From NCBI GenBank assembly GCA_002269645.1, contig NIVC01001888.1, forward strand, positions 1 through 64,000: a stretch of DNA of 64,000 bases, written 5' to 3'. The position numbers and the translations under genes are program-made. The notes under the pieces are model-generated. The model made no database searches, was not told where the DNA came from, and saw nothing but the letters and a program-made list of their open reading frames with translations. The DNA is from Macrostomum lignano (taxonomy: Eukaryota). Below are positions 16,539 through 49,964 of this stretch, piece after piece (position 1 is the first letter of the stretch; each line of letters starts with the position of its first letter).

Positions 16539-16586
16539 GTATCGCTAACGCTGAATGACGCCACCAGACGGACAAGACTGTGAGAA

Positions 16587-25550: not shown

Positions 25551-25984
25551 CGGGTTCTGCAATTACGAGTAGAGATCGGAGCGAAGAAGGCGGAAAGGAA
25601 CGGAGTCTCAATCTCATCCACCTCTCCAGTCTCATCCCATCAGTCTCACTTTTTAATGTGACAGAAGGCCCGCCAGACTTACAGACGCGGCGCAAGGACG
25701 CAACCGGTTCGTGGAGTGAACTCAGATCCTCCCCGAGATTCCCCACCGCAGCTCTCGAGGCCTCAGCCAATGGCGGCAGCGCTGCGGCAAAACTCAAAGC
25801 GCTCAGTAGCGAGTTGCGGGGCCATAAATCACAGGTGGGCAGCCGCTTTGACAAACAGCAGCTCACATCCCGCACGATCTGCAGGTGTGGACTCTTAGCT
25901 TTCTTTTCCTCATTTTTAGCAACTTGTCTACCAGTTCAGTCTCAGTTACAACAGGTTTCAGACATGCAGAGCAGCTTGTCACAC

Positions 25985-26710
25985 AGATTGGCAGAGGGGG
26001 TGGGGGATCAGCAGGGGGTCAGATTAGCAGAGGGTTGCGGATTGGCAGAGGGTGAGAAGGGGTGGATTGGCAGAGGAGGCGGATTGGCAGAGGTTGCGGA
26101 TTGGCAGAGGGTGAGAAGGGGTGGATTGGCAGAGGAGGCGGATTGGCAGAGGGGGCGGATTGGCAGAGAGGCGGATTGGCAGAGGAGGTGGCGGATTGGC
26201 AGAGGGAGCGGATTGGCAGAGGGGGCGGATTGGCAGAAGGGCAGATTGGCATTAGCAGAGCGGGGGGGGGCGGATTGGCAGAGGGTTGCGGATTGGCAGA
26301 GGGTGAGAAGGGGCGGTTTGGCATAGGGGGCGGATTGGCAGAGGAGGCGGATTGGCAGAGGGGGCGGATTGGCAGAGGGGTCAGATTGGCAGAGGGGGCG
26401 GATTGGCAGAGGAGGCGGATTGGCAGAGGGTGAGAAGGGGCGGATTGGCCGAGGGGGCGGATTGGCAGAGGGGCGGATTGGCAGAGAGGCGGATTGGCAG
26501 AGGGGGCGGCGATTGGCAGAGGGGCAGATTGGCATTAGCAGGGGGGGGGGGGCGTATTGGCAGAGGGGGCGAATTGGCAGAGGAGGCGGATTGGCAGAGG
26601 GGCGGATTGGCAGAGGGGCAGATTATCAAAATCGGTGGCAGCAAACGAAAGTTCTGCCAATCCGCCCCCTCTGCCAATCCGCCCCTTCATCCAATCCACC
26701 CCCTCTGCCA
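25985..26710. repeat. ~18-bp GC-box/CCAAT minisatellite (GGCGGATTGGCAGAGGGG); counterpart at 49022-49375
   Basis: Each unit carries ATTGG and usually GGGGCGG. Two inverted units at 26655-26715. Confidence 0.9.
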
Positions 26711-27107
26711 ATCCGCCGCTCTCATATTGACCTTACCTCTGATGTGAGAAACTGAGAAATGCAGAGGAAAATAAATCATTTCACTGTCAGATCTTCGGGT
26801 GTCGCGAAGCAAGTTGAAGCAAGGCTTAGAATTGGACAGGACCACCCATGGAGAGGGACAATGGGAATGACAGCTTTTGGCTCCGCTTCTGCATTCTTCC
26901 ACTCTGACTTCCCTCTCACTCACCTTCAAATGAAACAGTAAAGCTCAGACAAGGACTTCTAGAGCTAGCGCCATGCTATTTTGCACCTGAGCTATTTTTA
27001 GGAGTCCCCGGCTCAGATCATGGGGTCCCACCTGGTGTTAACAACGCCGGCGATCTTCACTTAAAAATGTAAAGAAACCGAAAAGCCTATTCTGGCTCCT
27101 CTCTACC

Positions 27108-27678
27108 TCTCCCTCTCCCTCTCTCTTCCTCTCCTTCTCCCTCTCCCTCTCCCTCTCCTTCTCCCTCTCCATCTCCCTCTTCCTCTCCCTCCCTTCTCTC
27201 TCTCCCTCTTCTCCCTCTCCCTCTCCCTCTCCTTCTCCCTCTCCATCTCCCTCTTCCTCTCCCTCCCTTCTCTCTCTCCCTCTCTCTTCCTCTCCCTCTC
27301 CCTCTCTTCACCCTCTCCCTCTCTCTTCCTCTCCTTTTCCCCCTCCCTCTTCATCTCCCTCTTCCTCTCCCTCTCCCTCTCCCTCTCCCTCTCTCTCCCT
27401 CTTCCTCTCTCTTCCTCTCCCTCTCCCTCTCTTCACCCTCTCCCTCTCTCTTCCTCTCCTTCTCCCTCTCCCTCTCCCTCTCCTTCTCCCTCTCCATCTC
27501 CCTCTTCCTCTCCCTCCCTTCTCTCTCTCCCTCTTCTCCCTCTCCCTCTCTCTTCCTCTCCTTTTCCCCCTCCCTCTTCATCTCCCTCTTCCTCTCCTTC
27601 TCCCTCACCCCCTCTCTCTCCCTCTCCCTCTCTTCTTCCTCTCCCTCTCCCTCTCTTCACCCTCTCCCTCTCCCTCCC
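27108..27678. repeat. Polypyrimidine (CTCTCC)n tract; shorter counterpart at 48410-48630
   Basis: Direct reading. Confidence 0.9.
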
Positions 27679-28544
27679 CATGCAACACAAAACCTCGAAC
27701 TTTCACTTCTCTCCCTCAGCTGCCCTCACCCAATTCAAATCTCACTGCTCCTCAGGCCGGCATGGCAACTCCCAGATCGCTCGAGTCGCTCCAGCAGCCG
27801 CAGACACCTGGGCTGGTCGAGAGGCGACCGCGAATTCCCGCTTGGAAACCGCTTGGCAACGGAGAGCCGTCTCCAGCTGCAGCCAGCCTGCGGCCTCTCA
27901 ACCCCGCTACCCTCAACCTTTAAGTCCACCTGGAAGTCGAGCCTTCAAACCGGTTCAAAAACCTAGAGCTGCCCTTAGCAACCGCCGCAGACCCACCTGT
28001 GGAGTCTCAACTCGACTGATTCTAAAAATAGCACAGCCGGCAGTGCAGGCGTCCTTGAACCTCACGCAAGGAGCAAGGACCCGAATAACTCTTGGTCTGT
28101 CCTTGCGGAACCTCAGCCACTGAGGCCCATCCCTCTCTGTAATATCCCAAGCTTTATTTAGCGTTAATTTCAGTCTTAAAACAAGCGCTGCATCTTTTTA
28201 ATGAATTCAACAAAATTTAGCAAAGATAATTGCATAGGAAATATTTACTAAGGCTTTGTACAAAGCAGCATATTGAGTTTATTTTATCCTACTTATATTA
28301 ACTGAATGTAATTACAAGTGGGCAAAAATTACTGGTTGTTATACTTTTAAAGTCATGCAGCTGAGCAAGAAAGTTGCGGTTATTTGCTTTGAAAATTACA
28401 AGCAGACAACTACAGAATCGTGTAACTCATGCAAAATTGAAGATGTAAGAAGCGATTCGGAAACAGTTTGGCCTTAAATGTGCAATCGAAATATTTTATG
28501 CGATGCGCCGATGGGAAATCAATTCAGAAGAGAGGCAAAAGCAA

Positions 28545-28765
28545 AGGGGTCAAGGGAGTCAGTGGGGTCAAGGGGAGTCAGTAGGGTCAAGGGCATTCAG
28601 TGGGGTCAAGGGAGTCAGTGGGGTCAAGGGGAGTCAGTGGGGTCAAGGGAGTCAGTGGGGTCAAGGGGAGTCAGTAGGGTCAAGGGCATTCAGTGGGGTC
28701 AAGGGAGTCAGTGGGGTCAAGGGGATTCAGTGGGGTCAAGGGGAGTTAGTGGGGTCAAGGAGGGT
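28545..28765. repeat. 18-19-bp minisatellite (GGGGTCAAGGGAGTCAGT); counterpart at 47215-47565
   Basis: Direct reading. Confidence 0.85.
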
Positions 28766-28940
28766 TAGTGGAATAAAGGTCAGCGATGCAATTGAGGATT
28801 ACAAGTACTTGGTACATTTTTTGTAAACAAAAATGAGCGCATCCGACGTCCTTAGTTCGATTCGCGTGCTATGTAACAATAAGGCAACAGTAATAGTAAC
28901 TTTTTCAACTCAAATCCCAATTTTTTAGAGGCCTTCTCTA

Positions 28941-29115
28941 GGGGTGTCCTGGGGTGCCGCTGTCTTGGGTGTCCTGGGGTGCCGCTGTCTTGGGTGTCCT
29001 GGGGTGCCGCTGTCTTGGGTGTCCTGGGGTGCCGCTGTCTTGGGTGTCCTGGGGTGCCGCTGTCTTGGGTGTCCTGGGGTGCCGCTGTCTTGGGTGTCCT
29101 GGGGTGCCGCTGTCT
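28941..29115. repeat. 25-bp repeat x7 in the TZF-1 3' region (x2 in arm 2 at ~47005-47055)
   Basis: GGGGTGCCGCTGTCTTGGGTGTCCT units. Confidence 0.9.
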
Positions 29116-29339
29116 CTTCGGGTGTCTTCCATGTTCAGTGCAGAAAGGCGCATCGGCGGCCGAACCTGCAGTGCCCGAGCTGAAGGCCAGGCAAGGCACG
29201 GTGCGGTACAGTGGGTGTCGAACCACCGACCTCAGCTCGGATTTTCCGTGGGCGAACCGGCACTTCGGACCGTAAGGACAGCTGCCGCTCTCCTGCGATG
29301 GCGATTTCGGTGGGCCATGAGTATGACCGGGCTGAGGCT

Positions 29340-29900
29340 ATCTATGACCCATGCCTGGCCTATGATGCCCATGACCTATAATATCATGACCTATGCCTGG
29401 CCTATGATGCCCATGACCTAATATCTATGACCTATACCTGGCCTATGATGCCCATGACCTATAATATCATGACCTATGCCTCGCCTATGATGCCCATGAC
29501 CTAATATCTAAGATCTATACCTGGCCTATGATGCCCATGACCTAATATCTATGACCTATACCTGGCCTATGATGTCCATGACCTAAAATCTATGACCTAT
29601 ACCTGGCCTATGATGTCCATGACCTATAATATCATGACCTATGCCTGGCCTATGATGCCCATGACCTAATATCTATGACCTATACCTGGCCTATGATGCC
29701 CATGACCTATAATATCATGACCTATGCCTGGCCTATGATGCCCATGACCTAATATCTAAGATCTATACCTGGCCTATGATGCCCATGACCTAATATCTAT
29801 GACCTATACCTGGCCTATGATGCCCATGACCTATATTTGGCATTTGATGCCCATGACCTATAATATCGTGACCTATACTACCAATTACTTATAATACTTA
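29340..29900. repeat. ~41-bp TGACCT-containing minisatellite in TZF-1 intron 2 (counterpart 46400-46790)
   Basis: TGACCTATACCTGGCCTATGATGCCCATGACCTAATATCTA-type units. Confidence 0.85.
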
Positions 29901-30509
29901 TGACCTATACTTTCTATGACTACTAGCCTCTCCGACGACCAATCCATATGACCACTGTATTCCAACCCATTTATATGACCATCAATCCATATGAGCATCA
30001 ATCTCGATGAGCACCCACTTCTATGACCATAAATCTCAATAACCAGAAGCCACTATGACGATCAATATCTATGTCCATCACACCATACGACCACGAATTT
30101 TTATGACAATCCTGTGACCATCAGCCTCCATGACCATCAATCCATGACTACGAATCGTTATGACCCATTAGTCTGTGGCTCTCAGACCCTATGACCATTA
30201 AACCCTATGCTTTACCAAAGCATTTCTATAAGCCAAGATGCAGTCTACTTCGCACTCACAGAGTAGTTCAGGCAGAGCTCTGTTTTGTACTTCTCAGTGT
30301 CCAAGTCTCTTCTCCTTGAGCCCTCCTGTTCCTCCATCAGCAGGTCGCTGACCAGCCGGTCGATGAGGCAGAAAGTGTCTTCGTCCGTGATGACACTGGC
30401 TTGCTCTGAAATATGAAATTTGGATGATGATTGTCTGGGATTATTGGCTGAGTTCTAATGTGTTGGGTATGTTGTAAACATGTGTTGTGACTCCAGACTT
30501 GATGTGTTT

Positions 30510-31300
30510 TGAATGTGTGCTGAATGCGTACTGAATGTGTGCTGAATGTGTGCTGAATGCGTGCTGAATGTGTTCTGAATGTGTGCTGAATGTGTGCTGA
30601 ATGTGTGCTGAATGCGTACTGAATGTGTGCTGAATGTGTGCTGAATGCGTGCTGAATGTGTTCTGAATGTGTGCTGAATGTGTGCTGAATGTGTGCTGAA
30701 TGCGTACTGAATGTGTACTGAATGTGTACTGAATGTGTACTGAATGTGTACTGAATGTGTGCTGAATGCGTATTGAATGTGTACTGAATGTGTACTGAAT
30801 GTGTTCTGAATATGTTCTGAATGTGTGCTGAATGTGTGCTGAATGTGTGCTGAATGTGTGCTGAATGTGTGCTGAATGTGTGCTGAATGTGTGCTAAATG
30901 TGTACTGAATGTGTGCTGAATGTGTTCTGAATGTGTTCTGAATGTGTGCTGAATGTGTGCTGAATGTGTGTAGATGTGTTCTGAATGTGTGCTGAATGTG
31001 TGCTGAAAGCGTGCTGAATGTGTTCTGAATGTGTGCTGAATGTGTGTAGATGTGTTCTGAATGTGTTCTGAATGTGTGCTGAATGTGTGCTGAATGTGTG
31101 CTGAACGTGTTCTGAATGTGTGCTGAATGTGTGCTGAATGTGTGCTGAATGTGTGCTGAATGTGTACTAAATGTGTGCTGAATGTGTGCTGAATGTGTAC
31201 TGAATGTGTGCTGAATGTGTGCTGAATGTGTGCTGAATGTGTGCTGAATGTGTGCTGAATGTGTACTAAATGTGTGCTGAATGCGTACTGAATCTGTAAT
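30510..31300. repeat. 11-bp minisatellite (TGTGTGCTGAA) in TZF-1 intron 1 (counterpart 44960-45590)
   Basis: Direct reading. Confidence 0.92.
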
Positions 31301-31695
31301 AAATGGGTGCTAAATGTGCAATAAATTCAATGAGCTGTCAATCAAAAATCCAGGTGTAGCAGAAATTTGCTTACCTTCGCTCAGTCGCTGCTCTCCATAG
31401 GCGGTCAATCCGGAACTGGAACTGCAGCTGCTCATGGCTGGCTATCAAAATTGCTGAGCTGTGGTGAAAAGTTGAGTAGTGAGTTCGGATGATTTTCAGT
31501 TTCAAGCCGCACAGATCCTCAGGCCGCTTTTATCGCCTTTGAAGGGAGGGGACGCCTCCTGAGCCAATGGGAGAAGCATGGAGAACCTCCGGGCCCCTTG
31601 AACCCCTCCCTCACCTTAGCGAATGGGAATCGCCCAGTTTCGAGCAAGCTTTGGGGTGAATAAATCTTGTATAGAAACTGGTGGCTGAGTGAAAA

Positions 31696-32180
31696 TCCGC
31701 CCCTCTGACACTCCTCAATCCGCCCCTCTGACACTCCTCAATCCGCCCCTCTGACACTCCTCAATCCGCCCCTCTGACACTCCTCAATCCGCCCCTCTGA
31801 CACTCCTTAATCCGCCCCTCTGACACTCCTCAATCCGCACCTCTGACACTCCTCAATCCGCCCCTCTGACATTCCTCAATCCGCCCCTCTGACACTCCTC
31901 AATCCGCCCCTCTGACACTCCTCAATCCGCACCTCTGACATTCCTCAATCCGCCCCTCTGACACTCCTCAATCTGCCCCTCTAAAACTCAATCCGCCCCT
32001 ATGACACTCCTCAATCCGCCCCTATGACACTCCTCAATCCGCCCCTCTGACACTCCTCAATCCGCCCCTATGACACTCCTCAATCCGCCACTCCGACACT
32101 CCTCAATCCGCCCCTCTGACACTCCTCAATCGGCCCCTCTAAAACTCAATCCGCCCCTATGACACTCCCCAATCCGCCCC
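31696..32180. repeat. 23-bp GC-box VNTR (AATCCGCCCCTCTGACACTCCTC), ~21 units, upstream of TZF-1
   Basis: About 5 units at the arm-2 position 44275-44395. Confidence 0.9.
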
Positions 32181-32711
32181 AGTTTCCGAATTCGAGTCCG
32201 GGAAACAAAAGGGCGGCTCGGGAAATCCCACCAGACTTTGAGATGCCGTGCAGGGAAGCAGCAGGCAAAGCGTGGGCGGCCAGCATTTCGTGCGGGGGAC
32301 TCGCACTGATCCTCCACAACCGCAACCTCAGCCAGGACTCAACCCCCGCAGATCCCCGCAGACTCCGGCTGCCTGTCTGCGGTCGGCCTCAGCTCCGACC
32401 TGCGAGCTCTCAAAGCCAATGGCGGAGCGCTGCGGCAAAACTCAAAGTGCTCAGTAGCGAGATGCGGAGCCATAAATCACAGGTGGGCAGCACAAACAGC
32501 AGCTCACACCTCACACCAGCTGCCTGCGTGGAATCAAAGCCTGGGCTTGCAAGCTGTCTGTAGGGTGGTGCATGTACTTTTAAACTCACCGCTTACAGTT
32601 GATCAAACACTAAACTACTAAAGTTTAGTTGAGTTGGTTTTGCTGGGCTTTGGTCTTTGTTGGAATTGGAAAACTAACAGCTGTGTGAATTAGCTTTTTG
32701 GGTTCATGTCA

Positions 32712-33118
32712 TTCAAATTGAGGTTCAGGTCATTCAGATTGAGGTTCAGGTCATTCAGATTGAGGTTCAGGTCATTCAGATTGAGGTTCAGGTCATTCAG
32801 ATTGAGGTTCAGGTCATTCAGATTGAGGTTCAGGTCATTCAGATTGAGGTTCAGGTCATTCAGATTGAGGCTCAGGTCATTCAGATTGAGTTTCAGGTCA
32901 TTCAGATTGAGGCTCAGGTCATTCAGATTGAGTTTCAGGTCATTCAGATTGAGTTTCAGGTCATTCAGATTGAGGTTCAGGTCATTCAGATTGAGGTTCA
33001 GGTCATTCAGATTGAGGCTCAGGTCATTCAGATTGAGTTTCAGGTCATTCAGATTGAGGTTCAGGTCATTCAGATTGAGGCTCAGGTCATTGAGATTGAG
33101 GTTCAGGTCATTCAGATT
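32712..33118. repeat. 21-bp minisatellite (GATTGAGGTTCAGGTCATTCA); absent from arm 2
   Basis: Direct reading. Confidence 0.93.
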
Positions 33119-33499
33119 GTGGCTTATAGGTATAGCTCGTAACCGTATTTTACAGAAGAAAATCAATTGGATTTAAACTGCGCAGGACCACCCATTGGGA
33201 AAGACAATGGGAATGACAGCTTTTGGCTCCGCTTCTGAATTCTTCACTCTGACTTCTCTCTCTCTCAGTCTCTCTCTCTTAGTCTCTCTCTCGCAACAAC
33301 CACCCCACCATGCGCACTGAAGAGGGGACGCCAAGCGTACACACAAACAAGGGGGTGCAAGGCACACGACTAACCCTAACACCCTCTAATAGAATTGGGG
33401 AGGTCAGATCATGGAGTCCCGGTGTTAACCAAGCCAGCATGCTTTACTTTAAAATGTAAAGAAAATGAAAATCCCTTCTGACTCTCCTCTCCCTGGCCC

Positions 33500-33900
33500 T
33501 CTCGCTTTCCCTCTCCTCTCCGCCCCTCTCCGCCCCTCTCCACCCCTCTCCGCCGCTCTCCGCTCCTCTCCGCCCCTCTCCACCCCTCTCCGCCCTCTCC
33601 GCTCCTCTCCGCCTCTCTCCGCTCCTCTCCGCCCTTCTCCGCTCCTCTCCGCCCCTCTCCGCTCCTCTCCGCCCCTCTCCGCTCCTCTCCGCCCCTCTCC
33701 GCCCTTCTCCGCTCCTCTCCGCCCCTCTCCGCCCTTCTCCGCCCCTCTCCGCCCCTCTCCTCTCCTCTCCGCCCCTCTCCGGCCCTCTCAGGCCCTCTCC
33801 GGCCCTCTATGCCTCTCTCCACCTCTCTCCGTCCCTCTCCGCCCCTCGCTGTCCCTCTCCGGCCCACTCCGCCTCTCTCCGCCCCTCTCCGCCCCTCACC
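33500..33900. repeat. 10-bp (GCCCCTCTCC)n array; related arrays at 40400-41085 and 43232-43960
   Basis: Direct reading. Confidence 0.9.
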
Positions 33901-34636
33901 GCGCTTTAAACAACTCCAATCTCCTCTCCTCTCTCTCAATCTCCCTTTCGCTCCTCAGGCCGGCATGGCAACTCCCAGATCGCTCGAGTCGCTCCAGCAG
34001 CCGCAGCCACCTGGGCTGGCCGAGAGGCGACCGCGAATTCCCGCTTGGAAACCGCTTGGCAACGGAGAGCCGTCTCCAGCTGCAGCCAGCCTGCGGCCTC
34101 TCAGCTCCGTCACCCCCTTCCCAATCCGAGTCTCGTTTGGTTGCTGGGGCCATGGGAGTTGGGAGACGGCCTGGAGACGCGTCAGTCTGAGATGGCCAGT
34201 CGAGTCCACCTGTGTAAAGCTGAGTTCTCGGCATCTCAACATTTCAAGATGGAATTGTATAAATGTATGCTAAAAATCAGGATTCTTTTTAAGTTTCAAG
34301 CTGCATAAATACTGAACTCCTGCTCAAGAAACTCAATTGTCAGTTGTGAAGAAAATATTCAGCTTTAAAATGAGAGAAAGACTGTGAAAACTGTGAAAAC
34401 TTTGAACTGGCCTCGACTGTCACTGCCATGCAGTATTCTGTCTCCACCCTCTGTCTCCACCCCCAGTGAAAGCGCGTCAGCCAATAGCAGGCCGCCTCAC
34501 ACCCACAGGTGAAGATGATTGTCCGCATGGAGTATATTAGAGTGAATAATTTCTCAGATCTCAGGCAGACTAATTCCAATTCTAGGCTAACTGAAATCCG
34601 CAACCTACAGCTTCACCCAGCTTCTCTGCCTCATCA

Positions 34637-35943
34637 ATGCAGCCGTCAAGGAATCGCAGCTTCATTGGCCTGAGGTGAGTTCTGAGAGCAGGTTTGAGTA
34701 CAGGTGTCAGATTTATGCATATATACTGACAATTAATCGCATCACTTCCTATTTTTTGCGTGTGTTGTGTAGTTTTACCACTTTTAAATATAAGCCCGGC
34801 CCTTTCTCTCTCTCACTTCTCTCCTATTCTATCTCTCCTATCTCGCTCTTCCAATTTTACGACCGATTAAAACTTCCACTGTCCGCCTGTTGCTAAATTT
34901 AGCTGTGTTAGCTCATTCTTTGTTATTTGTCCCACTAGTAATTGGACAACAGGGCATGCTTTTGAGACCTACTTAGCTCAGCAGTGTATAACCTCCCTGC
35001 CGTCCTGATCAAGCCTAAATATAAAACTTCCCTGCACTCTCTTCACAGCCCGCGGGTAGCTGGAGAGGAACCGCTTCCCATTGTGAAGCACATTCTGCAG
35101 CTGCAGAATCGGTACCTGCAGTACCTGCGGCAGCAGACTAACACCCAGCAGCAGCACCAGCTCGACACCCAGCAGCAGCACCAGCTCGAGACCCAGCAGC
35201 AGCTCCAGCTCGACACCCAGCAGCAGCACCAGCTCGAGACCCAGCAGCAGCTCCAGCTCGAGACCCAGCAGCAGCTCAAGCTCGAGACCCAGCAGCAGCT
35301 CCAGCTCGAGACCCAGCAGCAGCTCCAGCTCGAGACCCAGCAGCAGCTCCAGCTCGAGACCCAGCAGCAGCTCCAGCTCGAGACCCAGCAGCAGCACCAT
35401 TTCGAGACCCAGCAGCAACTCCAGCTCGAGACCCAGCAGCAGCTCAAGCTCGAGACCCAGCAGCAGCTCCAGCTCGAGACCCAGCAGCAGCTCCAGCTCG
35501 AGACCCAGCAGCAGCTCCAGCTCGAGACCCAGCAGCAGCTCCAGCTCGAGACCCAGCAGCAGCACCATTTCGAGACCCAGCAGCAACTCCAGCTCGAGAC
35601 CCAGCAGCAGCTCAAGCTCGAGACCCAGCAGCAGCTCCAGCTCCAGTTCCAGCCCGCTGCCGCCCCGCTGCCCAACGCCGGCCTGCAGCGCGCGGTGCTC
35701 GCCAGGAACGCCAGCCGGCCGCGCCGCCCCGTCTTCTGCGTCTTCTGCCGCAAGAACGGCGAGCCGGAGGCCTTCAGCAGCGGCCACACCCTGAAGGACG
35801 GCAACGGCAGCGTCGCCTGCCCGGTGCTCAGCCGCTTCACCTGCCCGCTGTGCGGCGCCACCGGCGGCAGCGCCCACACCGTGAAATACTGCCCGCTGGG
35901 CACCGGCCACGGCTGCGGCCGCAGGAAACTGACAGGACAGTGA
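34637..35943 (+). CDS. nanos: Nanos (nanos-A), ~310 aa from the ATG at 34637; exons 34637-34674 and 35049-35943; further 5' exons possible
   Basis: C-terminal FCVFCRKNGEPEAFSSGHTLKDGNGSVACPVLSRFTCPLCGATGGSAHTVKYCP is the Nanos double CCHC finger. Phase-2 intron CTGAG|GTGAGT ... TTCACAG|C keeps frame. ~21 LETQQQLQ repeats precede the finger. The start codon is tentative. Confidence 0.9.
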
Positions 35944-38417: not shown

Positions 38418-38557
38418 TTTACAGATGCTGACGCAAAGAAATGGACGCCATTAGATACCCTGCTTGCTATTTTCAAGCCATAAAAATCAATAAAGCAGTC
38501 TAGAATCATACCACCAATGCATTAATTTTGTAAACCACTCTCAACTCCAAATTTCAG

Positions 38558-40008
38558 TCCACCTCTCCAAGCACTCCATCAACCGAAGCAGGCAGCCCCT
38601 GTATAGGCTCAGCTTCCAGTGCCGCAGTTTCAGCCGGACTGAAATTTAAAACAGAGTTGTGCCGGAACTTCGAAGTGAGTCCTACACAGCTCTGCTGCTC
38701 TTGCTGCTTTATTTTCGTAAAACCGCCATCTGACACCCCACCCACAACCTGCCCCTATCCTCTCTGACACCCCCAAAATCTGCCCCTATCCTCTCTGACA
38801 CCCCCAATCTGCCCCTATCCTCTCTGACACCCCAATCTGCCCCTATCCTCTCTGCCACTCCCACAATCTGCCCCTATCCTCTCTGACACCCCCAAAATCT
38901 GCCCCTATCCTCTCTGACACCCCCAATCTGCCCCTATCCTCTCTGACACCCCCAATCTGCCCCTATCCTCTCTGCCACTCCCACAATCTGCCCCTATCCT
39001 CTCTGCCACTCCCACAATCTGCCCCTATCCTCTCTGACACCCCCAATCTGCCCCTATCCTCTCTAACACCCCACAATCTGCCCCTATCCTCTCTAACACC
39101 CCACAATCTGCCCCTATCCTCTCTGACACCCCACAACCTGCCCCTAATCCTCTCTGACACCCCACAATCTGGCCCTAATCCTCTCTGCCACTCCCACAAT
39201 CTGGCACCTAATCCTCTCTGGCACCCCCACAATCTGGCACCTAATCCTCTCTGGCACCCCCACAATCTGCCCCTAATCCTCTCTGGCACCCCACAATCTG
39301 CCCTAATCCTCTCTGCCACTCCCACAATCTGGCACCTAATCCTCTCTGGCACCCTCACAATCTGGCACCTAATCCTCTCTGGCACCCCCACAATCTGGCA
39401 CCTAATCCTCTCTGGCACCCCCACAATCTGCCCCTAATCCTCTCTGGCACCCCCACAATCTGCCCCTAATCCTCTCTGATGGGGTCCCTTGACAAGTCCC
39501 CATCCGCCCCTGACAAGTCCCAATCCGCCCCTGACAAGTCCCCATCCGCCCCTGACAAGTCCCAATCCGCCCCTGACAAGTCCCCATCCGCCCCTGACAA
39601 GTCACCATCCGCCCCTGACAAGTCCCCATCCGCCCCTGACAAGTCACCATCCGCCCCTGACAAGTCCCCATCCGCCCCTGACAAGTCACCATCCGCCCCT
39701 GACAAGTCACCATCCGCCCCTGACAAGTCACCATCCGCCCCTGGCAAGTCACCATCCGCCCCTGGCAAGTCACCATCCGCCCCTGACAAGTCACCATCCG
39801 CCCCTGACAAGTCACCAGCCGCATCCACCCCGCACTCCCGCAGCTCAGCGGCAGCTGCCCTTTTGCCAACCGGTGCCAATTCGCCCACGGCCCCGAGGAG
39901 CTGCGAGGCCGGCCCGACCGGCACTGGCTGTACAAAACGGAGCCCTGCCGCGCTTTCCATGGCGAAGGACTCTGCCGGTACGGCGGCCGCTGTCATTTTC
40001 TACACTGA
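38558..40008 (+). CDS. Third, diverged TIS11/ZFP36-like tandem CCCH gene (TZF-3); exons 38558-38674 and 39844-40008; first exon(s) not resolved
   Basis: TTTCAG|STSPSTP...GLKFKTELCRNFE|GTGAGT ... CCGCAG|LSGSCPFANRCQFAHGPEELRGRPDRHWLYKTEPCRAFHGEGLCRYGGRCHFLH*. Two C-x8-C-x5-C-x3-H fingers with (F/Y)KTE(L/P) lead-ins. Same intron position as TZF-1/2. Confidence 0.9.
38745..39817. repeat. Two adjacent minisatellites in the TZF-3 intron: ~29-bp (CTGCCCCTATCCTCTCTGACACCCCAAT) then 21-bp (CCATCCGCCCCTGACAAGTCA)
   Basis: Direct reading; switch at ~39480. Confidence 0.9.
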
Positions 40009-40399
40009 TTGACTTATGTGCATAGTTGTATGTATGTTTGTATTTATGTGTATATACGTCCATATGCTTAAAAATACAGACTTTACAGACTTATTTAAAA
40101 AATAATCCAACATATACTCAATTCCCGTTAAATTCTATTTAACTGACTTATTTTCTTGAAAATCAAATTTTCATACTGCGGTGAAGCTGATAAACTAAGA
40201 AGAGAATGCAACAAGGGAGGAAATAGGAGAGGAAATGGCGGGAGGCAACTTAGCGTCGGTTCGATATTCGGTGCCGCTCAGCTTAAGCTATTCGCCTCAC
40301 TTATTGTACTCATGTTTCTCTGTACTCGTGCTTTGAAATCTGTGACAATGAATTCATAGATGGGTGGACCTTTTTTCTAAACCTTTCTGCAAAGTCTCC

Positions 40400-41085
40400 G
40401 TCTCATTCTCCGCTCCTCTCCGATCCCTTCGCCCGCTCTGCCCCTCTCCGCCCCTCTCCGTTCCTCTCCGCCCCTCTCCGTTCCTCTCCGCTCCTCTCCG
40501 CTCCTCTCCGCCCCTCTCAGCCACTCTCCGCCCCTCTCAGCCACTCTCCGCCCCTCTCAGCCACTTTCCGCCCTCTCCGCCCCTCTCCGCCACTCTCCGC
40601 TCCTCTCCGCCCCTCTCCGCCACTCTCCACCCTCTCCGCCCCTCTCAGCCACTCTCCGCCCCTCTCAGCCACTCTCCGCCCCTCTCAGCCACTTTCCGCC
40701 CTCTCCGCTCCTCTCCGCCCCTCTCCGCCACTCTCCGCTCCTCTCCGCCACTCTCCACCCCTCTCCGCCCCTCTCCGCTCCTCTCCGCCCCTCTCCGCCA
40801 CTCTCCACCCCTCTCCGCCCCTCTCAGCCACTCTCCGCCCCTCTCAGCCACTCTCCGCCCCTCTCAGCCACTTTCCGCCCTCTCCGCCCCTCTCCGCCAC
40901 TCTCCGCTCCTCTCCGCCACTCTCCACCCCTCTCCGCCCCTCTCCGCTCCTCTCCGTCCCTCTCCGCCACTCTCCAACCCTCTCCGCCCCTCTCAGCCAC
41001 TCTCAGCCACTCTCCGCCCCTCTCCGCCACTCTCCGCTCCTCTCCGCCCCTCTCCGCCCCTCCCCGTCCTCTCTGCTCCTCTCCA
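40400..41085. repeat. 10-bp (GCCCCTCTCC)-family array in the spacer
   Basis: Direct reading. Confidence 0.9.
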
Positions 41086-41124
41086 GAAAAAATCAGAAGG
41101 GTGGGGACGGGAGAGGAGAGCAGG

Positions 41125-41387
41125 AGAGAGTGACAGGGTGAGAGAGAGTGACAGGGGGAAAGAGAGTGACAGGCCGGGAGAGAGTGACAGGCCGGGAGAG
41201 AGTGACAGGCCGGGAGAGAGTGACAGGGGCCGGGAGAGAGTGACAGGCCGGGAGAGAGTGACAGGCCGGGAGAGAGTGACAGAGGCCGGGAGAGAGTGAC
41301 AGGGGCCGGGAGAGAGTGACAGGCCAGGAGAGAGTGACAGGCTGGGAGAGAGTGACAGGGCGGAAGAGAGTGACAGGCCGGGAGAGA
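41125..41387. repeat. 18-20-bp minisatellite (GGGAGAGAGTGACAGGCC)
   Basis: Direct reading. Confidence 0.88.
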
Positions 41388-42243
41388 GGAAAATCGCGGA
41401 GGTGCGATCAGGAAATGTAAGGTTTTTTTTGGAAGCAGTTCTTGAGGTGCTTTGTGAAGCTGCTGTGTTAAACGACTTATAGTCCTCGGTCGGGGTCAGT
41501 CAGTCAGTCAGTCAGGCTGGGCCTCAAAGCAGGCTTCACAGCAGGGTTTCTCAGTTTTTTATTGTCTGTTTAACAGCAATTATTTATGCTTCCTTGACCT
41601 TATTCGCTGAGGAGCGAAGATTTGCGCTCACCTACGATATGAGCTGGAGACCATACGTACCCTCGTATATCGTTTGAGTCCAACTCGGTTGCTTGCCAAG
41701 CGGTGACCGCGGTGACCCAGCTGTGAGCTGCAGTCAGCAAAGCCGACCAGCCGAAGCGGTGAAGTCCGATCTGCAGCAGCTTGAGACACCTGGGATGCTC
41801 AGGTTGGCTCAGCTCTCCAAGTGTTCGTAACAGCCCAGTTCGAGTTGTGCTGATTCGCCATGGCAACTAGCGGGAATGCAGAGCTCGGGGCCGAGACCAG
41901 GTGGGCCCGGCAGCGGAATGAAAGCAACTGGCTGCCCCCCTCAATTTCACTTTGAGTCCGTCTGCCATCAAAAACTGGAACTTTGGAATTCGAACTCAGG
42001 ACGATCAATATTCTCATCAACTAGAGTTCTAAAGGAACCACATCACAAGCGTGTTCGACAAAGTGATGGATTGCAACTAATTTCATAACTTGTTAATTGA
42101 TTATATATTATACTCGTAATTTTCTAATTAGTGTTTATTTAATAAAATTTTAAAGCAAAGATTACGAGTAGTTACAGAACACAAAACTAGGCATTCCATA
42201 TTTTATGTGGTTAGTTTGTATTACAATTGAGAGTGCAGGGCTG

Positions 42244-42853
42244 TCACTGTCCTGTCAGTTTCCTGCGGCCGCAGCCGTGGCCGGTGCCCAGCGGGCAGTA
42301 TTTCACGGTGTGGGCGCTGCCGCCGGTGGCGCCGCACAGCGGGCAGGTGAAGCGGCTGAGCACCGGGCAGGCGACGCTGCCGTTGCCGTCCTTCAGGGTG
42401 TGGCCGCTGCTGAAGGCCTCCGGCTCGCCGTTCTTGCGGCAGAAGACGCAGAAGACGGGGCGGCGCGGCCGGCTGGCGTTCCTGGCGAGCACCGCGCGCT
42501 GCAGGGCGGCGTTGGGCAGCGGGGCGGCAGCGGGCTGGAACTGGAGCTGGAGCTGCTGCTGGGTCTCGAGCTGGAGCTGCTGCTGGGTCTTGAGCTGGTG
42601 CTGCTGCTGGGTCTCGAGCTGGAGCTGCTGCTGGGTCTCGAGCTAGAGCTGCTGCTGGGTCTCGAGCTGGAGCTGCTGCTGGGTCTCGAGCTTGAGCTGC
42701 TGCTGGGTCTCGAGCTGGAGCTGCTGCTGGGTCTCGAGCTGGAGCTGCTGCTGGGTTTCGAGCTGGAGCTGCTGCTGGGTCTCGAGCTGGAGCTGCTGCT
42801 GGGTGTCAGTCTGCTGCCGCAGGTACTGCAGGTACCGATTCTGCAGCTGCAGA
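42244..42853 (-). pseudogene. nanos: nanos-B: intact zinc-finger segment, but start exon and acceptor deleted and an in-frame TAG in the Q-rich repeat
   Basis: ZF region essentially identical to nanos-A. CAG>TAG at 42645-42643. Junction GCTAAAAA-TC-TGCAGCTG at ~42853 joins the equivalents of 34278 and 35096. Confidence 0.85.
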
Positions 42854-43231
42854 TTTTTAGCATACATTTATAAAATTCCATCTTGAAATGTTTCGATGCC
42901 GAGAACTCAGCTTTACACAGGTGGACTCGACTGGGCATCTCAGACCGACGCGTCTCCAGGCCGTCTCCCAACTCCCATGGCCCCAGCAACCAAACGAGAC
43001 TCGGATTGGGAAGGGGGGTGACGGAGCTGAGAGGCCGCAGGCTGGCTGCAGCTGGAGACGGCTCTCCGTTGCCAAGCGGTTTCCAAGCGGGAATTTGCGG
43101 TTGCCTCTCGGCCAGCCCAGGTGGCTGCGGCTGCTGGAGCGACTCGAGCGATCTGGGAGTTGCCATGCCGGCCTGAGGAGCGAAAGGGAGATTGAGAGAG
43201 AGGAGAGGAGATTGGAGTTGTTGAAAGCGCG

Positions 43232-43960
43232 GTGAGGGGCGGAGAGGGGCGGAGAGAGGCGGAGAGGGCCGGAGAGGAGCGGAGAGGGGCGGAGAGGGGC
43301 GGAGAGGGGCGGAGAGAGGCGGAGAAAGGCGGAGAGGGGCGGAGAGCGGCGGAGAGAGGCGGAGAGGGCCGGAGAGGGGCGGAGAGGGGCGGAGAGCGGC
43401 GGAGAGAGGCGGAGAGGGCCGGAGAGGGGCGGAGAGGGCCGGAGAGGGGCGGAGAGGGGCGGAGAGGGGCGGAGAGGGGCGGAGAGGGGCGGAGAGGGGC
43501 GGAGAGGGGCAGAGAGGGGCAGAGAGGGGCGGTGAGGGGCGGAGAGCGGCGGAGAGAGGCGGAGAGGGCCGGAGAGGGCCGGAGAGGGGCGGAGAGCGGC
43601 GGAGAGAGGCGGAGAGAGGCGGAGAGGGGCGGAGAGGGGCGGAGAGGGGCGGAGAGAGGCGGAGAGGGCCGGAGAGGGGCGGAGAGGGGCGGAGAGGGGC
43701 GGAGAGGGCCGGAGAGAGGCGGAGAGGGCCGGAGAGGGGCGGAGAGCGGCGGAGTGAGGCGGAGAGGAGCGGAGAGAGGCGGAGAGGGCCGGAGATGGGC
43801 GGAGAGGGCCGGAGAGGGGCGGAGAGAGGCGGAGAGGGCCGGAGAGGGGCGGAGAGGGGCGGAGAGGGGCGGAGAGGGCCGGAGAGGGGCGGAGAGCGGC
43901 GGAGAGAGGCGGAGAGGGCCGGAGAGGGGCGGAGAGCGGCGAAGAGGGGCGGAGAGGAGC
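43232..43960. repeat. (GGAGAGGGGC)n array, expanded counterpart of 33500-33900
   Basis: Direct reading. Confidence 0.92.
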
Positions 43961-44840
43961 GGCGAGGTAGAGGTTGAGGTAGAAAGGCGAGGGAAAGCGA
44001 GAGGGCGAGGGAGAGGAGATGAAGAGGTAGAGTCAGAAGGGATTTTCAGTTTCTTGACATTTTGAAGTGAGCTGGCTGCTCTCCAAAGCAGCCGGAGTCT
44101 GTGGGGATCTGCGGTGGGGAGTCCTGGCTGGGGTTGCAGTGGGGAGGATCAGTGCGAGTTCCCCGCACGAAATGCTGGCCGCCCACGCTTTGCCTGCTGC
44201 TTCCCTGCACGGCGTCTCAAAGTCTTGTGGGGATTTCCGAGCCGCCCTTTTTTCCCGGACTCGAATTCGGAAACTGGGGTGGATTGAGGAGTGTCAGAGG
44301 GGCGGATTGAGGAGTGTCAGAGGGGCGGATTGGGGAGTGTCAGAGGGGCGGATTGAAGAGCGTCAGAGGGGCGGGTTGAGGACTGTCAGAGTGACACGAA
44401 GTGTGTCAGAGTGAATTCCCCAAATCCATTTTAGGAAATAGTTTCATAGCTTCGTTTTCATTTGATTCATGGTGTCATCGTGTCATTTCCTTAATTTTGC
44501 TTTCTGCTGCCTTTTCGCAATGCTTTGCCTTTCCTTATGAGAGGGGGTCATCAGACCGGGATGTCTTTTCTCCAGAAAGTTAAGCATTGATTTTCACTCA
44601 GCCACCAGTTTCTATACAAGATTTATTCACCCCAAAGCTTGCTCGATCCCCATTCGCTAAGGTGAGGGAGGGGTTCAAGGGGCCCGGAGGTTCTCCTTGC
44701 TTCTCCCATTGGCTCACGAGGCGTCCCCTCCCCTCAAAGGCGATAAAAGCGGCCTGAGGATCTGTGCGGCTTGAAACTGAAAATCATCCGAACTCACTAC
44801 TCAACTTTTCACCACAGCTTAGCAATTTTGATAGCCAGCC

Positions 44841-46983
44841 ATGAGCAGCTGCAGTTCCAGTTCCGGATTGACCGCCTATGGAGAGCTGCGACTGAGCGAA
44901 GGTACGCAAATTTCTGCTGCACCTGGCTTCTTGATTGACAGCTCATTGAATTTATTGCACATTCAGCACACATTCAGCACACATTCAGCACACATTCAGT
45001 ACGCATTCAGCACACATTCAGTACACATTCAGCACACATTCAGCACACATTCAGAACACATTCAGCACACATTCAGCACACATTCAGAACACATTTAGCA
45101 CACATTCAGCACACATTCAGTACGCATTCAGCACACATTCAGCACACATTCAGCACACATTCAGCACACATTCAGTACGCATTCAGCACACATTCAGTAC
45201 ACATTCAGCACACATTCAGCACACATTCAGAACACATTCAGCACACATTCAGCACACATTCAGCACACATTCAGCACACATTCAGCACACATTCAGAACA
45301 CATTCAGCACACATTCAGCACACATTCAGAACACCTTCAGCACACATTCAGCACGCATTCAGCACACATTCAGCACACATTCAGCACACATTCAGCACAC
45401 ATTCAGCATACATTCAGAATGCATTCAGATTCAGAACATATCTACACACTCAGAACACATCTACAGACATTCAGAACACATTCAGTACGCATTCAGCACA
45501 CATTCAGTACACATTCAGTACACATTCAGTACGCATTCAGCACGCATTCAGCACACATTCAGCACACATTCAGCACACATTCAGAACACATCAAGTCTGT
45601 AGTCACAACACATGTTTACAACATACCCAACACATTAGAACTCAGCCAATAATCCCAAACAATCATCATCCAAATTTCATATTTCAGAGCAAGCCAGTGT
45701 CATCACGGACGAAGACACTTTCTGCCTCATCGACCGGCTGGTCAGCGACCTGCTGCTGGAGGAACAGGAGGGCTCAAGGAGAAGAGACTTGGACACTGAG
45801 AAGTACAAAACAGAAATCTGCCTGAACTACTCTGTGAGTGCGAAGTAGACTGTGCATCTTGGCTTATAGAAATGCATTGGTAAAGCATAGGGTTTAATGG
45901 TCATAGGGTCTGAGATCCACAGATTGATGTGTCATAAGGATTCGTAGTCATGGACTAATGGTCATGGAGGCTGATGGTCACAGGATTGTCATAAAAATTC
46001 GTGGTCGTATGGTGTGATGGACATAGATATTGATCGTCATAGTGGCTTCTGGTTATTGAGATTTATGGTCATAGAAGTGGGTGCTCATCGAGATTGATGC
46101 TCATTGCTCGAGGTTGATGGATTGATGGTCATATGGATGGGTTGCAATACAGTGATGGTTATATAGATGGGTTGCAATACAGTGATGGTCATATAGATGG
46201 GTTGCAATACAGTGATGGTCATATAGATGGGTTGCAATACAGTGATGGTCATATAGATGGGTTGCAGTACAGTGATGGTCATAAAGATGGGTTGCAGTAC
46301 AGTGATGGTCATAAAGATGGGTTGCAATACAGTGATGGTCATATAGATGGGTTGCAATACAGTGATGGTCATATAGATGGGTTGCAATACAGTGATGGTA
46401 TAGCCAGGTATAGGTCATAGATATTAGGTCATGGGCATCATAGGCCAGGTATAGATCATAGATTTTAGGTCATGGGCATCAAAGCCAGGTATAGGTCATA
46501 GATATAAGGTCATGGGCATCATAGACCAGGTATAGGTCATAGATATTAGGTCATGGGCATCATATTCCAGGTATAGGTCATAGATATTAGGTCATGGACA
46601 TCATAGGCCAGGTATAGGTCATGGACGTCATAGGCCAGGTATAGGTCATGATATTATAGGCCATTTGCATCATAGGCCAGGTATAGGTCATAGACATTAG
46701 GTCATGGGCATCATAGGCCAGGTATAGGTCATAGATATTAGGTCATGGGCATCATAGGCCAGGCATAGGTCATAGATAGCCTCAGCCCGGTCATACTCAT
46801 GGCCCACCGAAATCGCCATCGCAGGAGAGCGGCAGCTGTCCTTACGGTCCGAAGTGCCGGTTCGCCCACGGCAAATCCGAGCTGAGGTCGGTGGTTCGAC
46901 ACCCACTGTACCGCACCGTGCCTTGCCTGGCCTTCAGCTCGGGGCACTGCAGGTTCGGCCGCCGATGCGCCTTTCTGCACTGA
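44841..46983 (+). CDS. TIS11/ZFP36-like tandem CCCH zinc-finger protein (TZF-2), 121 aa, intact; exons 44841-44901, 45688-45833, 46825-46983
   Basis: [122 protein letters not shown]-x8-C-x5-C-x3-H, 18-aa linker, C-x7-C-x5-C-x3-H. Exon lengths 61+146+159 = 366. Confidence 0.9.
46137..46400. repeat. 30-bp repeat x9 (GATGGGTTGCAATACAGTGATGGTCATATA) in TZF-2 intron 2
   Basis: Present as a single diverged monomer in arm 1 (~29945-29980). Confidence 0.9.
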
Positions 46984-49964
46984 ACATAGAAGACACCCGA
47001 AGAGACAGCGGCACCCCAGGACACCCAAGACAGCGGCACCCCAGGACACCCCAAAAGAAGGCCTTTAAAAAATTATGATTTGAGTTGAAAAGTTACTATT
47101 ACTGTTGCCTTATTGTTACATACTACGCGAATCGAACTAAGGACGTCGGATGCGCTCATTTTTGTTTACAAAAAATGTACAAAGTACTTGTAATCCTCAA
47201 TTGCATCGCTCACCTTTACTCCACTGACCCTCCTTGACCCTACTGACCCTCCTTGACTCCACTGACTCCCCTTGACCCTAATGACTCCCCTTGACCCCAC
47301 TGATCCCTTGACCCCACTGACTCCCTTTGACCCCACTGAATCCAATGACTCCCCTTGACCCCACTGACTCCCTTTGACCCCACTGAATCCAATGACTCCC
47401 CTTGACCCCACTGACTCCCTTTGACCCCACTGAATCCCCTTGACCCCACTGATCCCTTGACCCCACTGACTCCCTTTGACCCCACTGAATCCCCTTGACT
47501 CCACTGACTCCCTTTGACCCCACTGAATCCAATGACTCCCCTTGACCCACTGATCTTTTGACCCCTTTGCTTTTGCCTCTCTTCTGAATTGAATTTTCCC
47601 ATCGGCGCATCGCTTAAAATATTTTTGATTGCACATTTAAGGCCAAACTGTTTCCGAATCGCTTCTTACATCTTCGATTTTGCATGAGTTACACAGTTCT
47701 GTAGTTGTCTGTCTGTAATTTTTAAAGCAAATAACCGCAACTTTCTTGCTAAGCTGCATGACTTTAAAAGTATAACAACCAGTAATTTTTGCCCATTTGT
47801 AATTACATTCAGTTAATATAAGTAGGATAAAATAAACTCAATATGCTGCTTTGTACAGACCCTTAGTAAATATTTTCTATGCAATTATCTTTGCTAAATT
47901 TTGTTGAATTCATTAAAAAGATGCAGCGCTTGTTTTAAGACTGAAATTAACGCTAAATAAAGCTTGGGATATTACACGGAGGGATGGGCCTCAGTGGCTG
48001 AGGGTCCGCAAGGACAGACCAAGCGTGAGGTTCAAGGACGCCTGCACTGCCGGCTGTGCTATTTTTAGAATCAGTCGAGTTGAGACTCCACAGGTGGGTC
48101 TGCGGCGGTTGCTAAGGGCAGCTCTAGGTTTTCGAACCGGTTTGAAGGCTCGACTTCCAGGTGGACTTAAAGGTTGAGGGCAGCGGGGTTGAGAGGCCGC
48201 AGGCTGGCTGCAGCTGGAGACGACTCTCCGTTGCCAAGCGGTTTCCAAGCGGGAATTCGCGGTCGCCTCTTGGCCAGCCCAGGTGGCTGCGGTTGCTGGA
48301 GCGACTCGAGCGATCTGGGAGTTGCCATGCCGGCCTGAGGAGCTGTGAGATTTGAACTGGGTGAGGGCAGCTGAGGGAGAGAAGTGAAAGTTCGAGGTTT
48401 TGTGTTGCATGGGGAGGGAGAGGGAGAGGGAGAGGGTGAGGGAGAAGGAGAGAGAGGGAGAGGGAGAGGGAGAGGGAGAGGGTGAGGGAGAAGGAGAGAG
48501 AGGGAGAGGGAGAGGGAGAGGGTGAGGGAGAGGGAGAGGGAGAAGGAGAGGGAGAGGGAGAGGGAGAGGGAGAGGGAGAGGGAGAGGGAGAGGGAGAGGG
48601 TGAGGGAGAAGGAGAGAGAGGGAGAGGTAGAGATAGGTAGAGAGGAGCCAGAATAGGCTTTTCGGTTTCTTTACATTTTCAAGTGAAGATCGCTGGCGTT
48701 GTTAACACCAGGTGGGATTCCATGATCTGAGCCGGGGACTCCTAAAAATAGCTCAGGTGCAAAATAGCATGGCGCTAGCTCTAGAAGTCCTTGTCTGAGC
48801 TTTACTATTTCATTTGAAGGTGAGTGAGAGGGAAGTCAGAGTGTTAGAATTCAGAAGCGGAGCCAAAATCTCATTCCCATTGTCCCTCTCCATGGGTTGT
48901 CCTGTCCAATTCCTTGCCTTGCTTCAACTTGCTTCGCGACACCCGAAGATCTGACAGTGAAATGATTTATTTTCCTCTGCATTTCTCAGGTTCTCGCATC
49001 AGCTGTAAGGTCAATATGAGAGCGGCGGATTGGCAGAGGGGCGGATTGGCAGAGGGGCGGATTGGCAGAGGGGCGGATTGGCAGAGGGGGCGGATTGGAT
49101 GAAGGGGCGGATTGGATGAAGGGGCGGATTGGCAGAGGGGGCGGATTGGATGAAGGGGCGGATTGGCAGAGGGGGCGGATTGGATGAAGGCGCGGATTGG
49201 CAGAGGGGCGGATTGGCAGGGGGCGGATTGGCAGAGGGGCGGATTGGCAGAGGGGCGGATTGGCAGAGGGGGCGGATTGGCAAAGGGGGCGGATTGGATG
49301 AAGGGGCGGATTGGCAGAGGGGCGGATTGGATGAAGGGGCGTATTGGCAGGGGGCGGATTGGCAGAGGGGCAGATTGTCAAAATCGGTGGCAGCAAACGA
49401 AAGTTCTGCCAATCTGTGTGACAAGCTGCTCTGCATGTCTGAAACCTGCTGTAACTGAGACTGAACTGGTAGACAAGTTGCTAAAAATGAGGAAAAGAAA
49501 GCTAAGAGTCCACACACGCAGCTCGTGCGGGATGTGAGCTGCTGTTTGTCAAAGCGGCTGCCCACCTGTGATTTATGGCCCCGCAACTCGCTACTGAGCG
49601 CTTTGAGTTTTGCCGCAGCGCTGCCGCCATTGGCTGAGGCCTCGAGAGCTGCGGTGGGGAATCTCGGGGAGGATCTGAGTTCACTCCACGAACCGGTTGC
49701 GTCCCTGCGCCGTCTGTAAGTCTGGCGGGCCTTCCCGAGCTGTCACATTAAAAATATCCCTATGCATGTTTGCTATAAATTGTTTTAAACTGCAAATCGC
49801 CGCAGAAATTGCTTAAAATCCAAAACCGGTGTCAAGAGAGGAACTATGTAGAAGAAAATGGAGCTGAATTTAGTAACAGTCGAAAAAGATTTCACAGGTG
49901 GGTCAGCGTTTGTTGCTAAGTGTAGCACTGGGGTTTTGAGGACCAAAGCAAGAGGGAAGCAGAG

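Follow-up and report, generated by a model that had tools for sequence, protein, structure and literature searches.

The locus described here is a palindrome with nanos and tandem zinc-finger (TZF) genes in the genome of the flatworm Macrostomum lignano. It lies on contig NIVC01001888.1, in a 64-kb stretch of DNA that was analysed at its full length and is referred to below as the window. Comparison of the window with itself (blastn) yields a single collinear chain of nine anti-diagonal blocks, which pairs 25664-35959 with 49734-42228. The gaps in this chain are mostly minisatellite arrays that differ in length between the arms, together with a few insertions or deletions (indels); tandem repeats make up 46% of the window, and about half of each arm is minisatellite. 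The high-identity parts of the arms, as given by the chained inverted blocks, are 25664-35959 for arm 1 and 42228-49734 for arm 2, the latter being shorter through smaller minisatellites and deletions. High-identity homology ends 16 bases past the nanos stop codon. Beyond that limit, a weaker inverted homology of ~80%, dropping to ~60%, continues for ~350 bases per side (36013-36305 versus 42237-41953, ~64-80%) and takes arm 1 to ~36305 and the start of arm 2 back to ~41953, so that the homology at the inner arm ends tapers gradually, with no abrupt junction. The unique spacer that lies between the arms (36306-41952, ~5.65 kb) houses a third TZF gene, and its two halves have no mutual inverted homology except for common minisatellites. 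Within each arm, the TZF gene lies further out and points outward, and nanos lies at the spacer side and points inward, in head-to-head orientation. The initial annotation of this DNA had proposed two inverted arms at 25650-49754, separated by a spacer of ~5.6 kb and each bearing a nanos and a TIS11-type CCCH gene. Its limits lie within 20 bases of the 25664-49734 chain, the measured spacer agrees, and both genes are present in each arm. The 24-kb inverted segmental duplication with its nanos and TZF genes is a real feature of the M. lignano genome. A literature search found no paper on a Macrostomum palindrome or on this nanos/TZF pair.

With tandem repeats masked, arm 1 and arm 2 differ at 63 of 2755 aligned bases (2.29%); divergence is 2.73% in non-coding and 0.78% in coding sequence (Fisher p = 0.002), and over 2.8 kb of arm alignment there are 7 indels of a single base. 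The same structure is found at a second locus, L001 (positions 36589-58947 of the Mlig_3_7 contig NIVC01001363.1, a 22-kb annotated copy), which is collinear with window positions 28546-47051 across arm 1, spacer and arm 2. M. lignano, a hidden polyploid, has undergone a recent whole-genome duplication, and its assemblies are redundant and difficult (PMC10468722). This circumstance, together with an arm divergence (~2%) close to that separating the window from L001, is what might be held in favour of regarding the palindrome as an assembly artefact, made by joining haplotypes or homeologs in inverted orientation or by a chimeric long read. We consider such an artefact very improbable. An identical arm 1-spacer-arm 2 layout is present in the non-identical L001 and also underlies the older gene model P0015, which follows the minus strand and takes in the arm 2 TZF, the arm 2 nanos and the spacer before entering arm 1. 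The arms are structurally distinct and have arm-specific variants that are common to both loci, the spacer is unique sequence with an annotated gene, and the inverted homology fades gradually at its inner end. It is the occurrence of the same layout at a second, non-identical locus that disposes of the concern about a mis-join. Since real substitutions separate L001 from the window locus, it is evidently an allele, homeolog or paralog of that locus and not the same DNA. Four arms are accordingly available for comparison, W1 and W2 being arms 1 and 2 of the window, and L1 and L2 those of L001.

The arm TZF gene has three exons with canonical junctions and encodes two zf-CCCH fingers (Pfam). In arm 1 it lies on the minus strand. 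Exon 1 (31375-31435, ATG at 31435-31433) contributes 20 residues and one further nucleotide and ends at a GTAAGC donor. Exon 2 (30260-30405, 146 nucleotides, with a TTTCAG acceptor and a GTGAGT donor) ends within finger 1, at KYKTELCLNYS. Exon 3 (29135-29292) has lost one nucleotide from a G-run, reading CCC at 29174-29176 on the plus strand; the resulting frameshift removes finger 2 and the frame runs on to a TAA at 28852-28854, making a protein of 215 residues. Arm 2 has the gene on the plus strand: exon 1 at 44841-44901 (ATG at 44841; donor GTACGC, compared with GTAAGC in the other three arms), exon 2 at 45688-45833 (146 nucleotides, encoding KYKTEIC with a private L to I change) and exon 3 at 46825-46983, which retains GGGG at 46938-46941, encodes finger 2 as C-x7-C-x5-C-x3-H and closes with a TGA at 46981-46983. 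Its spliced open reading frame (ORF) is intact and 121 residues long. An in-phase ATG exon 1 is found in all four arms, as are CCAAT-like and TATA-like boxes upstream of it (CCCATTGGCTCA at 31571-31560 and GGCGATAAAAGCGG at 31537-31524, spanning 31524-31571 on the minus strand in arm 1, with mirror motifs at 44705-44716 and 44739-44752 in arm 2), for which a promoter role is predicted. An ATG within exon 2 of arm 1 (30337-30335) was considered as the true start and rejected: it arises by a private CTG to ATG change, and the conserved upstream ATG exon exists. The frameshifted arm 1 TZF, the open arm 2 TZF, the 3 differences among the 146 nucleotides of exon 2, and the contrast of KTELC with KTEIC had all been noted in the initial annotation and stand as described there.

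The third TZF gene, in the spacer (37857-40008, plus strand), has exons at 38558-38674 and 39844-40008. Its model, consisting of a Met, the exon behind TTTCAG|38558 and the second exon, amounts to 94 residues, and it is 99% identical to, and equal in length with, the 94-residue M. lignano protein PAA68905.1 (BOX15_Mlig028414g1). The annotated ATG corresponds to 37857-37859 (CCAATATG|GCAAGT). In both loci, the annotated start (37857-37865 in the window, 10001-10009 in L001) consists of an isolated ATG with GCAAGT directly behind it. From there to the acceptor downstream the distance is ~0.7 kb in the window and 1.6 kb in L001, and the intervening 20-mer minisatellite differs in length. That ATG is either a genuine GC-AG micro-exon or the annotation's placement of a spliced-leader AUG; under either reading of the start, the acceptor is the predicted one. 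The spacer TZF is 45% identical to the arm TZF and is evidently its older paralog. It was missed in the initial annotation, as were a nanos remnant just outside arm 1 and the absence of an ATG from arm 1 nanos, both described below.

The nearest relatives of solved structure to the arm TZF are TIS11d and TTP (E ~1e-20); a word-indexed protein search found relatives at no more than 53% identity. The likeness to TIS11/TTP (ZFP36) proteins is partial and lies in the two CCCH fingers, the YKTELC-type lead-in and the 18-residue linker. The arm proteins have x8-x5-x3 spacing in finger 1 and, in all four arms, x7-x5-x3 spacing in finger 2, with lead-ins KYKTELC and then a degenerate LYRTVPC, whereas both fingers of the spacer protein are canonical (x8-x5-x3), with lead-ins KFKTELC and LYKTEPC and a 19-residue linker. 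Arm and spacer proteins alike end at the last His of finger 2 and have no C-terminal CNOT1-binding motif. They are very short (121 and 94 residues) and lack the NOT1-binding tail of TIS11/TTP; the arm TZF is further set apart from that family by its x7 spacing and degenerate lead-in in finger 2, and by an intron that splits finger 1. The arm and spacer proteins may bind RNA like TTP but would be unable to recruit NOT1 through a C-terminal CNOT1-binding motif.

The nanos finger regions (35728-35940 on the plus strand in arm 1, 42459-42247 on the minus strand in arm 2) encode identical protein in the two arms. The C-terminal finger pair is complete (CCHC-CCHC at 35728-35900): a regular-expression match on the translation finds C-x2-C-x12-H-x10-C followed by C-x2-C-x7-H-x4-C. 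Pfam scores the region as zf-nanos (PF05741) at 85 bits, the cut-off being 27 bits, and its nearest relative of solved structure is zebrafish Nanos (3ALR, E = 3e-19). Arm 1 nanos (35101-35943, plus strand) has an ORF that is open from 34984 to a stop at 35941-35943, with no ATG anywhere in its 319 codons. The N-terminal half is encoded by a 24-bp minisatellite (35143-35643 in arm 1) with the 8-residue unit LETQQQLQ. The array stays in frame while its unit number varies among the four arms (~19-21, 11, 12 and 18), at 35143-35643 and 42544-42804 in the window and ~7480-7750 and ~16340-16800 in L001; it constitutes a length-variable Q-rich domain in an RNA-binding protein. Arm 2 nanos (42244-42846, minus strand) has the same acceptor motif as arm 1 and ~11 repeat units, and is interrupted by a TAG at 42643-42645 (a CAG to TAG change within the repeat); its deletion junction is at ~42852/42853. 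What is missing there is an 815-bp segment that lies directly upstream of the nanos acceptor in arm 1 (34279-35093, plus strand), the difference being a clean indel. Three outgroups, namely a degenerate third nanos remnant, P0017 and L001 arm 2 with its 13-bp relic, retain either the junction as in arm 1 or a portion of the segment. They support a deletion in arm 2, and the alternative of an insertion into arm 1 was rejected on their account. The remnant lies just outside arm 1 (25140-25560, plus strand; the outgroup part is 25140-25196) and has kept the 5' region and 3' flank of nanos, its finger region being deleted. The open nanos of arm 1, the 5' deletion and nonsense codon of arm 2, and the difference between NAGLQ and NAALQ that distinguishes the copies had been correctly recognised beforehand.

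An exhaustive HMMER search shows the nanos finger to be 90-95% identical to three M. lignano UniRef proteins; these are frame-hopping gene models that map piecewise onto the window at 93-100% identity. A vertebrate genome with programmed DNA elimination, which the minisatellite load and the GC-rich codons had suggested, found nothing relevant in the literature to support it and was discarded in view of these M. lignano matches. M. lignano has other nanos paralogs, P0016 and P0017. A word-indexed protein search with nanos as the query returned no matches, and the exact sequence of the arm 1 nanos ORF, looked up in public assemblies, was not found there either. A six-frame scan of the whole window found no NOT1-interacting motif of the F-x-x-W-x-D-Y type. 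That N-terminal motif is a feature of vertebrate Nanos that is not universal outside vertebrates, and its absence therefore does not exclude membership of the Nanos family. With that family (zebrafish 3ALR, Drosophila 5KL1), these genes have the complete C-terminal finger pair in common; they differ from it in having no such motif, a Q-rich N-terminal half encoded by a minisatellite, and no genomic ATG.

How an ORF lacking ATG might be translated is suggested by what is known of trans-splicing. Approximately 30% of M. lignano genes are trans-spliced, with a leader that ends in ATG and an acceptor motif [T/C]TNCAG (PMC8629364), and the terminal AUG of flatworm spliced leaders can serve as initiator, according to Cheng et al. 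2006 as cited in PMC9851317. The first [T/C]TNCAG motifs past the stop that opens the nanos ORF predict exon starts at 35101 and 35107, both in phase 0. There is no in-phase ATG exon with an in-phase donor for nanos within 4.5-5 kb upstream; scans for one gave only weak GC-donor candidates, which lie within a dispersed repeat and were rejected. Since the first acceptors are in frame and no such exon is found upstream, the most economical model would have arm 1 nanos translated from the AUG of a trans-spliced leader. The acceptor motif recurs in frame in nearly every nanos repeat unit, at least six times downstream of the arm 2 TAG, and that stop is therefore not a certain null. An operon of nanos with the spacer TZF was also considered; the gap of 2.6 kb (~2.1 kb with repeats removed) exceeds the published 1-kb criterion. 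Like flatworm mRNAs that use the leader AUG, nanos is an ATG-less ORF directly behind an in-frame [T/C]TNCAG acceptor; unlike theirs, its use of the leader is predicted from sequence alone, and the annotated ATG of the spacer TZF, on an upstream micro-exon with a GCAAGT donor, may be genuine. A caution for reading flatworm ORFs follows: a missing ATG is no sign of a pseudogene, nor does a stop that precedes in-frame acceptors prove a null.

Comparison of the four arms bears directly on the history of the palindrome. Between the window and L001, substitutions affect 0.98% of arm 1, 1.86% of the spacer and 2.87% of arm 2 (Fisher p = 5e-5 for arm 1 versus arm 2). At 1681 unique sites common to W1, W2, L1 and L2, pairwise divergence is 1.07% for W1-L1, 2.44% for W1-W2, 2.14% for L1-L2 and 2.80% for W2-L2. 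Among the informative sites, 7 join orthologous arms, 1 joins the arms within a locus and 1 has the third pattern. Because 7 of these 9 sites group orthologous arms, the palindrome evidently predates the split of the window locus and L001. The initial annotation had called the duplication recent on the strength of the few differences between exons; an origin before the separation of the two loci qualifies that description. It had also invoked homogenisation of palindromic arms by gene conversion between them. A test for conversion shows the arms within a locus to be less alike than orthologous arms between loci, and the 7:1:1 distribution of sites gives no sign of general homogenisation; only locally, in the nanos finger block, is conversion suggested. 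There, 0-1 differences separate W1, W2 and L1 where ~7 are expected (Poisson p = 0.003), and W2 does not differ from L1 at all, which points to local conversion or, as a second possible cause, constraint on W2 until recently.

Changes are distributed very unevenly: 25 are private to W2, 20 to L2, and 8 each to W1 and L1 (binomial p = 3e-4). So are the lesions. The TZF G-run is GGG only in W1 and GGGG in W2, L1 and L2, which have intact 121-residue TZF ORFs. W2 carries private changes in its TZF, at position +4 of the intron 1 donor (GTAAGC to GTACGC) and in the YKTELC lead-in. Nanos is open in W1 and L1, and L1 has nanos and TZF both open. In L2, nanos is damaged differently than in W2, by another stop (QYL*YL), a frameshifting duplication and two substitutions in the finger. 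Its deletion junction is different too: of the 815-bp segment absent from W2, 13 bases survive in L2, and we conclude on that ground that the segment was lost independently in W2 and L2.

The interpretation that we favour, and hold to be the probable one, is that the redundant arm of the palindrome is decaying asymmetrically and that the good arm bears one young or artefactual lesion, in place of a fixed complementary loss. The frameshift in W1 is private to the window and consists of a single-base change in a homopolymer, one of the 7 single-base indels between the arms; it is therefore an allele of very recent origin or an error in the consensus. The palindrome would have formed before the window and L001 split in the hidden polyploid; thereafter, the arms would have evolved largely independently and unequally. 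Arm 1 would have been conserved, with both ORFs open except for the private G-run deletion in the window TZF, while arm 2 accumulated ~2.5-3 times more changes and its nanos was damaged independently at the two loci. On this account arm 1 would be the functional arm, and the nanos and TZF genes would presumably act in the germline.

The initial annotation had read the same lesions as reciprocal inactivation after a recent duplication: the sole working nanos would be in arm 1 and the sole working TZF in arm 2, with selection preserving both arms, and one functional set would need both. In its favour, the window does have a frameshifted TZF on arm 1 and a truncated nanos on arm 2, and the lower divergence of coding than of non-coding sequence between the arms, already given, is also in its favour. 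Were it true, the palindrome would be locked in place by reciprocal gene loss. It fails at the level of the genome, where loss is not complementary: both ORFs are intact on L001 arm 1, which thus holds a complete set on one arm, and the TZF frameshift is confined to one of four arms, within a homopolymer. Because L1 has both genes intact and because there are further nanos paralogs (P0016 and P0017), the claimed need for both arms is unsupported. Moreover, the whole of arm 2 is the faster-evolving, the opposite of what is expected of an arm preserved for its TZF, and the arm 2 TZF itself has a weakened donor and the substitution in its lead-in. Reciprocal inactivation is therefore, in our estimate, improbable. 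The resemblance to reciprocal gene loss after whole-genome duplication extends to the duplicated two-gene unit, the differing lesions and the recently polyploid genome (PMC10468722), whereas here the losses are non-complementary genome-wide, L1 retaining both genes, and the lesion of the good arm is private and putative.

A variant with about as little to commend it supposes divergent resolution in a young polyploid. The lesions of the window would be fixed, with nanos retained on arm 1 and TZF on arm 2, and L001 would keep both genes on arm 1; leader AUG starts past the arm 2 stop would render the 'nonsense' allele productive and yield tunable isoforms of nanos that differ in their Q-repeat.

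A more radical alternative regards the genes of all four arms as dead or never-expressed relics, with the spacer TZF the only functional gene and the arm 1 ORFs open merely through youth. This we think unlikely. In its favour, nanos has neither an ATG of its own nor a conserved N-terminal motif, the arm TZF has the x7 spacing in finger 2 and the degenerate lead-in in every arm, and the coding changes in TZF, counted roughly by hand over the four arms, come to 6 non-synonymous and 4 synonymous. The conservation of arm 1 argues the other way, being significantly greater than that of the spacer and of arm 2. Promoter-like motifs, the ATG, both splice junctions and a TZF ORF of 121 residues are all in place in three of the four arms; the nanos ORF contains more than 100 CAG codons, any of which a single change would turn into TAG, and both arm 1 copies have it open; and the CCHC-CCHC pattern of nanos is flawless. 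The missing start codon would be accounted for by a leader AUG.

Several considerations nevertheless weigh against asymmetric decay as we have set it out. In the annotated 22-kb copy at L001, no gene other than the spacer TZF (PAA68905.1) has been recorded, which fits arm genes that are unexpressed or dead; for nanos and the arm TZF, expression and 5' ends are predictions made from DNA sequence; and the in-frame acceptors of nanos are partly a by-product of its CAG glutamine codons. Five of the seven sites that support orthology cluster at 32318-32358 and are possibly a single event. The slower evolution of arm 1 could come from recent exchange between the arm 1 copies and not from selection, and nanos in W2 may have been converted or constrained recently, which makes its status as an old pseudogene doubtful.

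The palindromes of mammalian sex chromosomes (human Y P1-P8, VCY; PMC6790999) offer the closest structural parallel: they too are large inverted repeats with a unique spacer and germline-type genes, and they too vary in structure through deletions within arms. In contrast to their identity of >99.9%, the arms described here are 2.3% diverged and, to judge from the 7:1:1 sites, would undergo little ongoing conversion. Half of their length is minisatellite, one of them is visibly decaying, and the host is a hermaphrodite without sex chromosomes. The locus provides a sequence-resolved example of what would be a redundant palindrome arm decaying in a hidden polyploid. It also provides a corrected nanos/TZF gene map for a flatworm model of germline and stem-cell biology, in which the arm TZF has three exons, nanos is start-less behind trans-splice acceptor motifs, and the spacer TZF is the annotated gene.

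Two short elements recur within the palindrome. One is a conserved element of ~110-160 bp with the core CCGCTTGGAAACCGCTTGGCAACGGAGAGC…CAGCTGCAGCCAGCC, present in five copies, two in each arm and one in the spacer: 27750-27910 and 33950-34110 on the plus strand, and 37389-37499, 43015-43170 and 48180-48343 on the minus strand. In each arm one copy lies upstream of nanos; the spacer copy is ~1 kb upstream of the spacer TZF, in the opposite orientation. The element has no match in Rfam; a regulatory module and a short dispersed repeat are both conceivable. (Neither the Rfam nor the tRNA scan of the whole window gave a match.) The other is a short dispersed element with the translation …AAAKLK[A/V]LSSE[L/M]R[G/S]HKSQVGS…, found at three places, of which two are close to the outer arm ends (25770-25840 and 49565-49630) and one is within arm 1 (32400-32500). 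The older M. lignano gene models P0012 and P0016 splice it onto nanos, perhaps as an artefact of ab initio prediction.

The flanks of the palindrome hold further features that are recorded here for completeness. An apparently intact non-long-terminal-repeat retrotransposon occupies 196-5605 on the minus strand; its ORF1 (444 codons, no Pfam match) precedes an ORF2 of 1248 codons with endonuclease, reverse transcriptase and RNase H domains (Pfam). Gene fragments at 21071-22469 (minus strand), 16584-16922 (plus strand) and 53050-53898 (plus strand) comprise two SNAPC1-like exons, an ankyrin-repeat exon and an ORF with a weak HSP20/alpha-crystallin match. A pure (TATC)n microsatellite runs for 3.5 kb (9202-12764, 892 units), and it is flanked by inverted copies of a 12-mer satellite (5999-8077 and 14181-14932), which make up a second inverted arrangement in the window, composed of satellite only.

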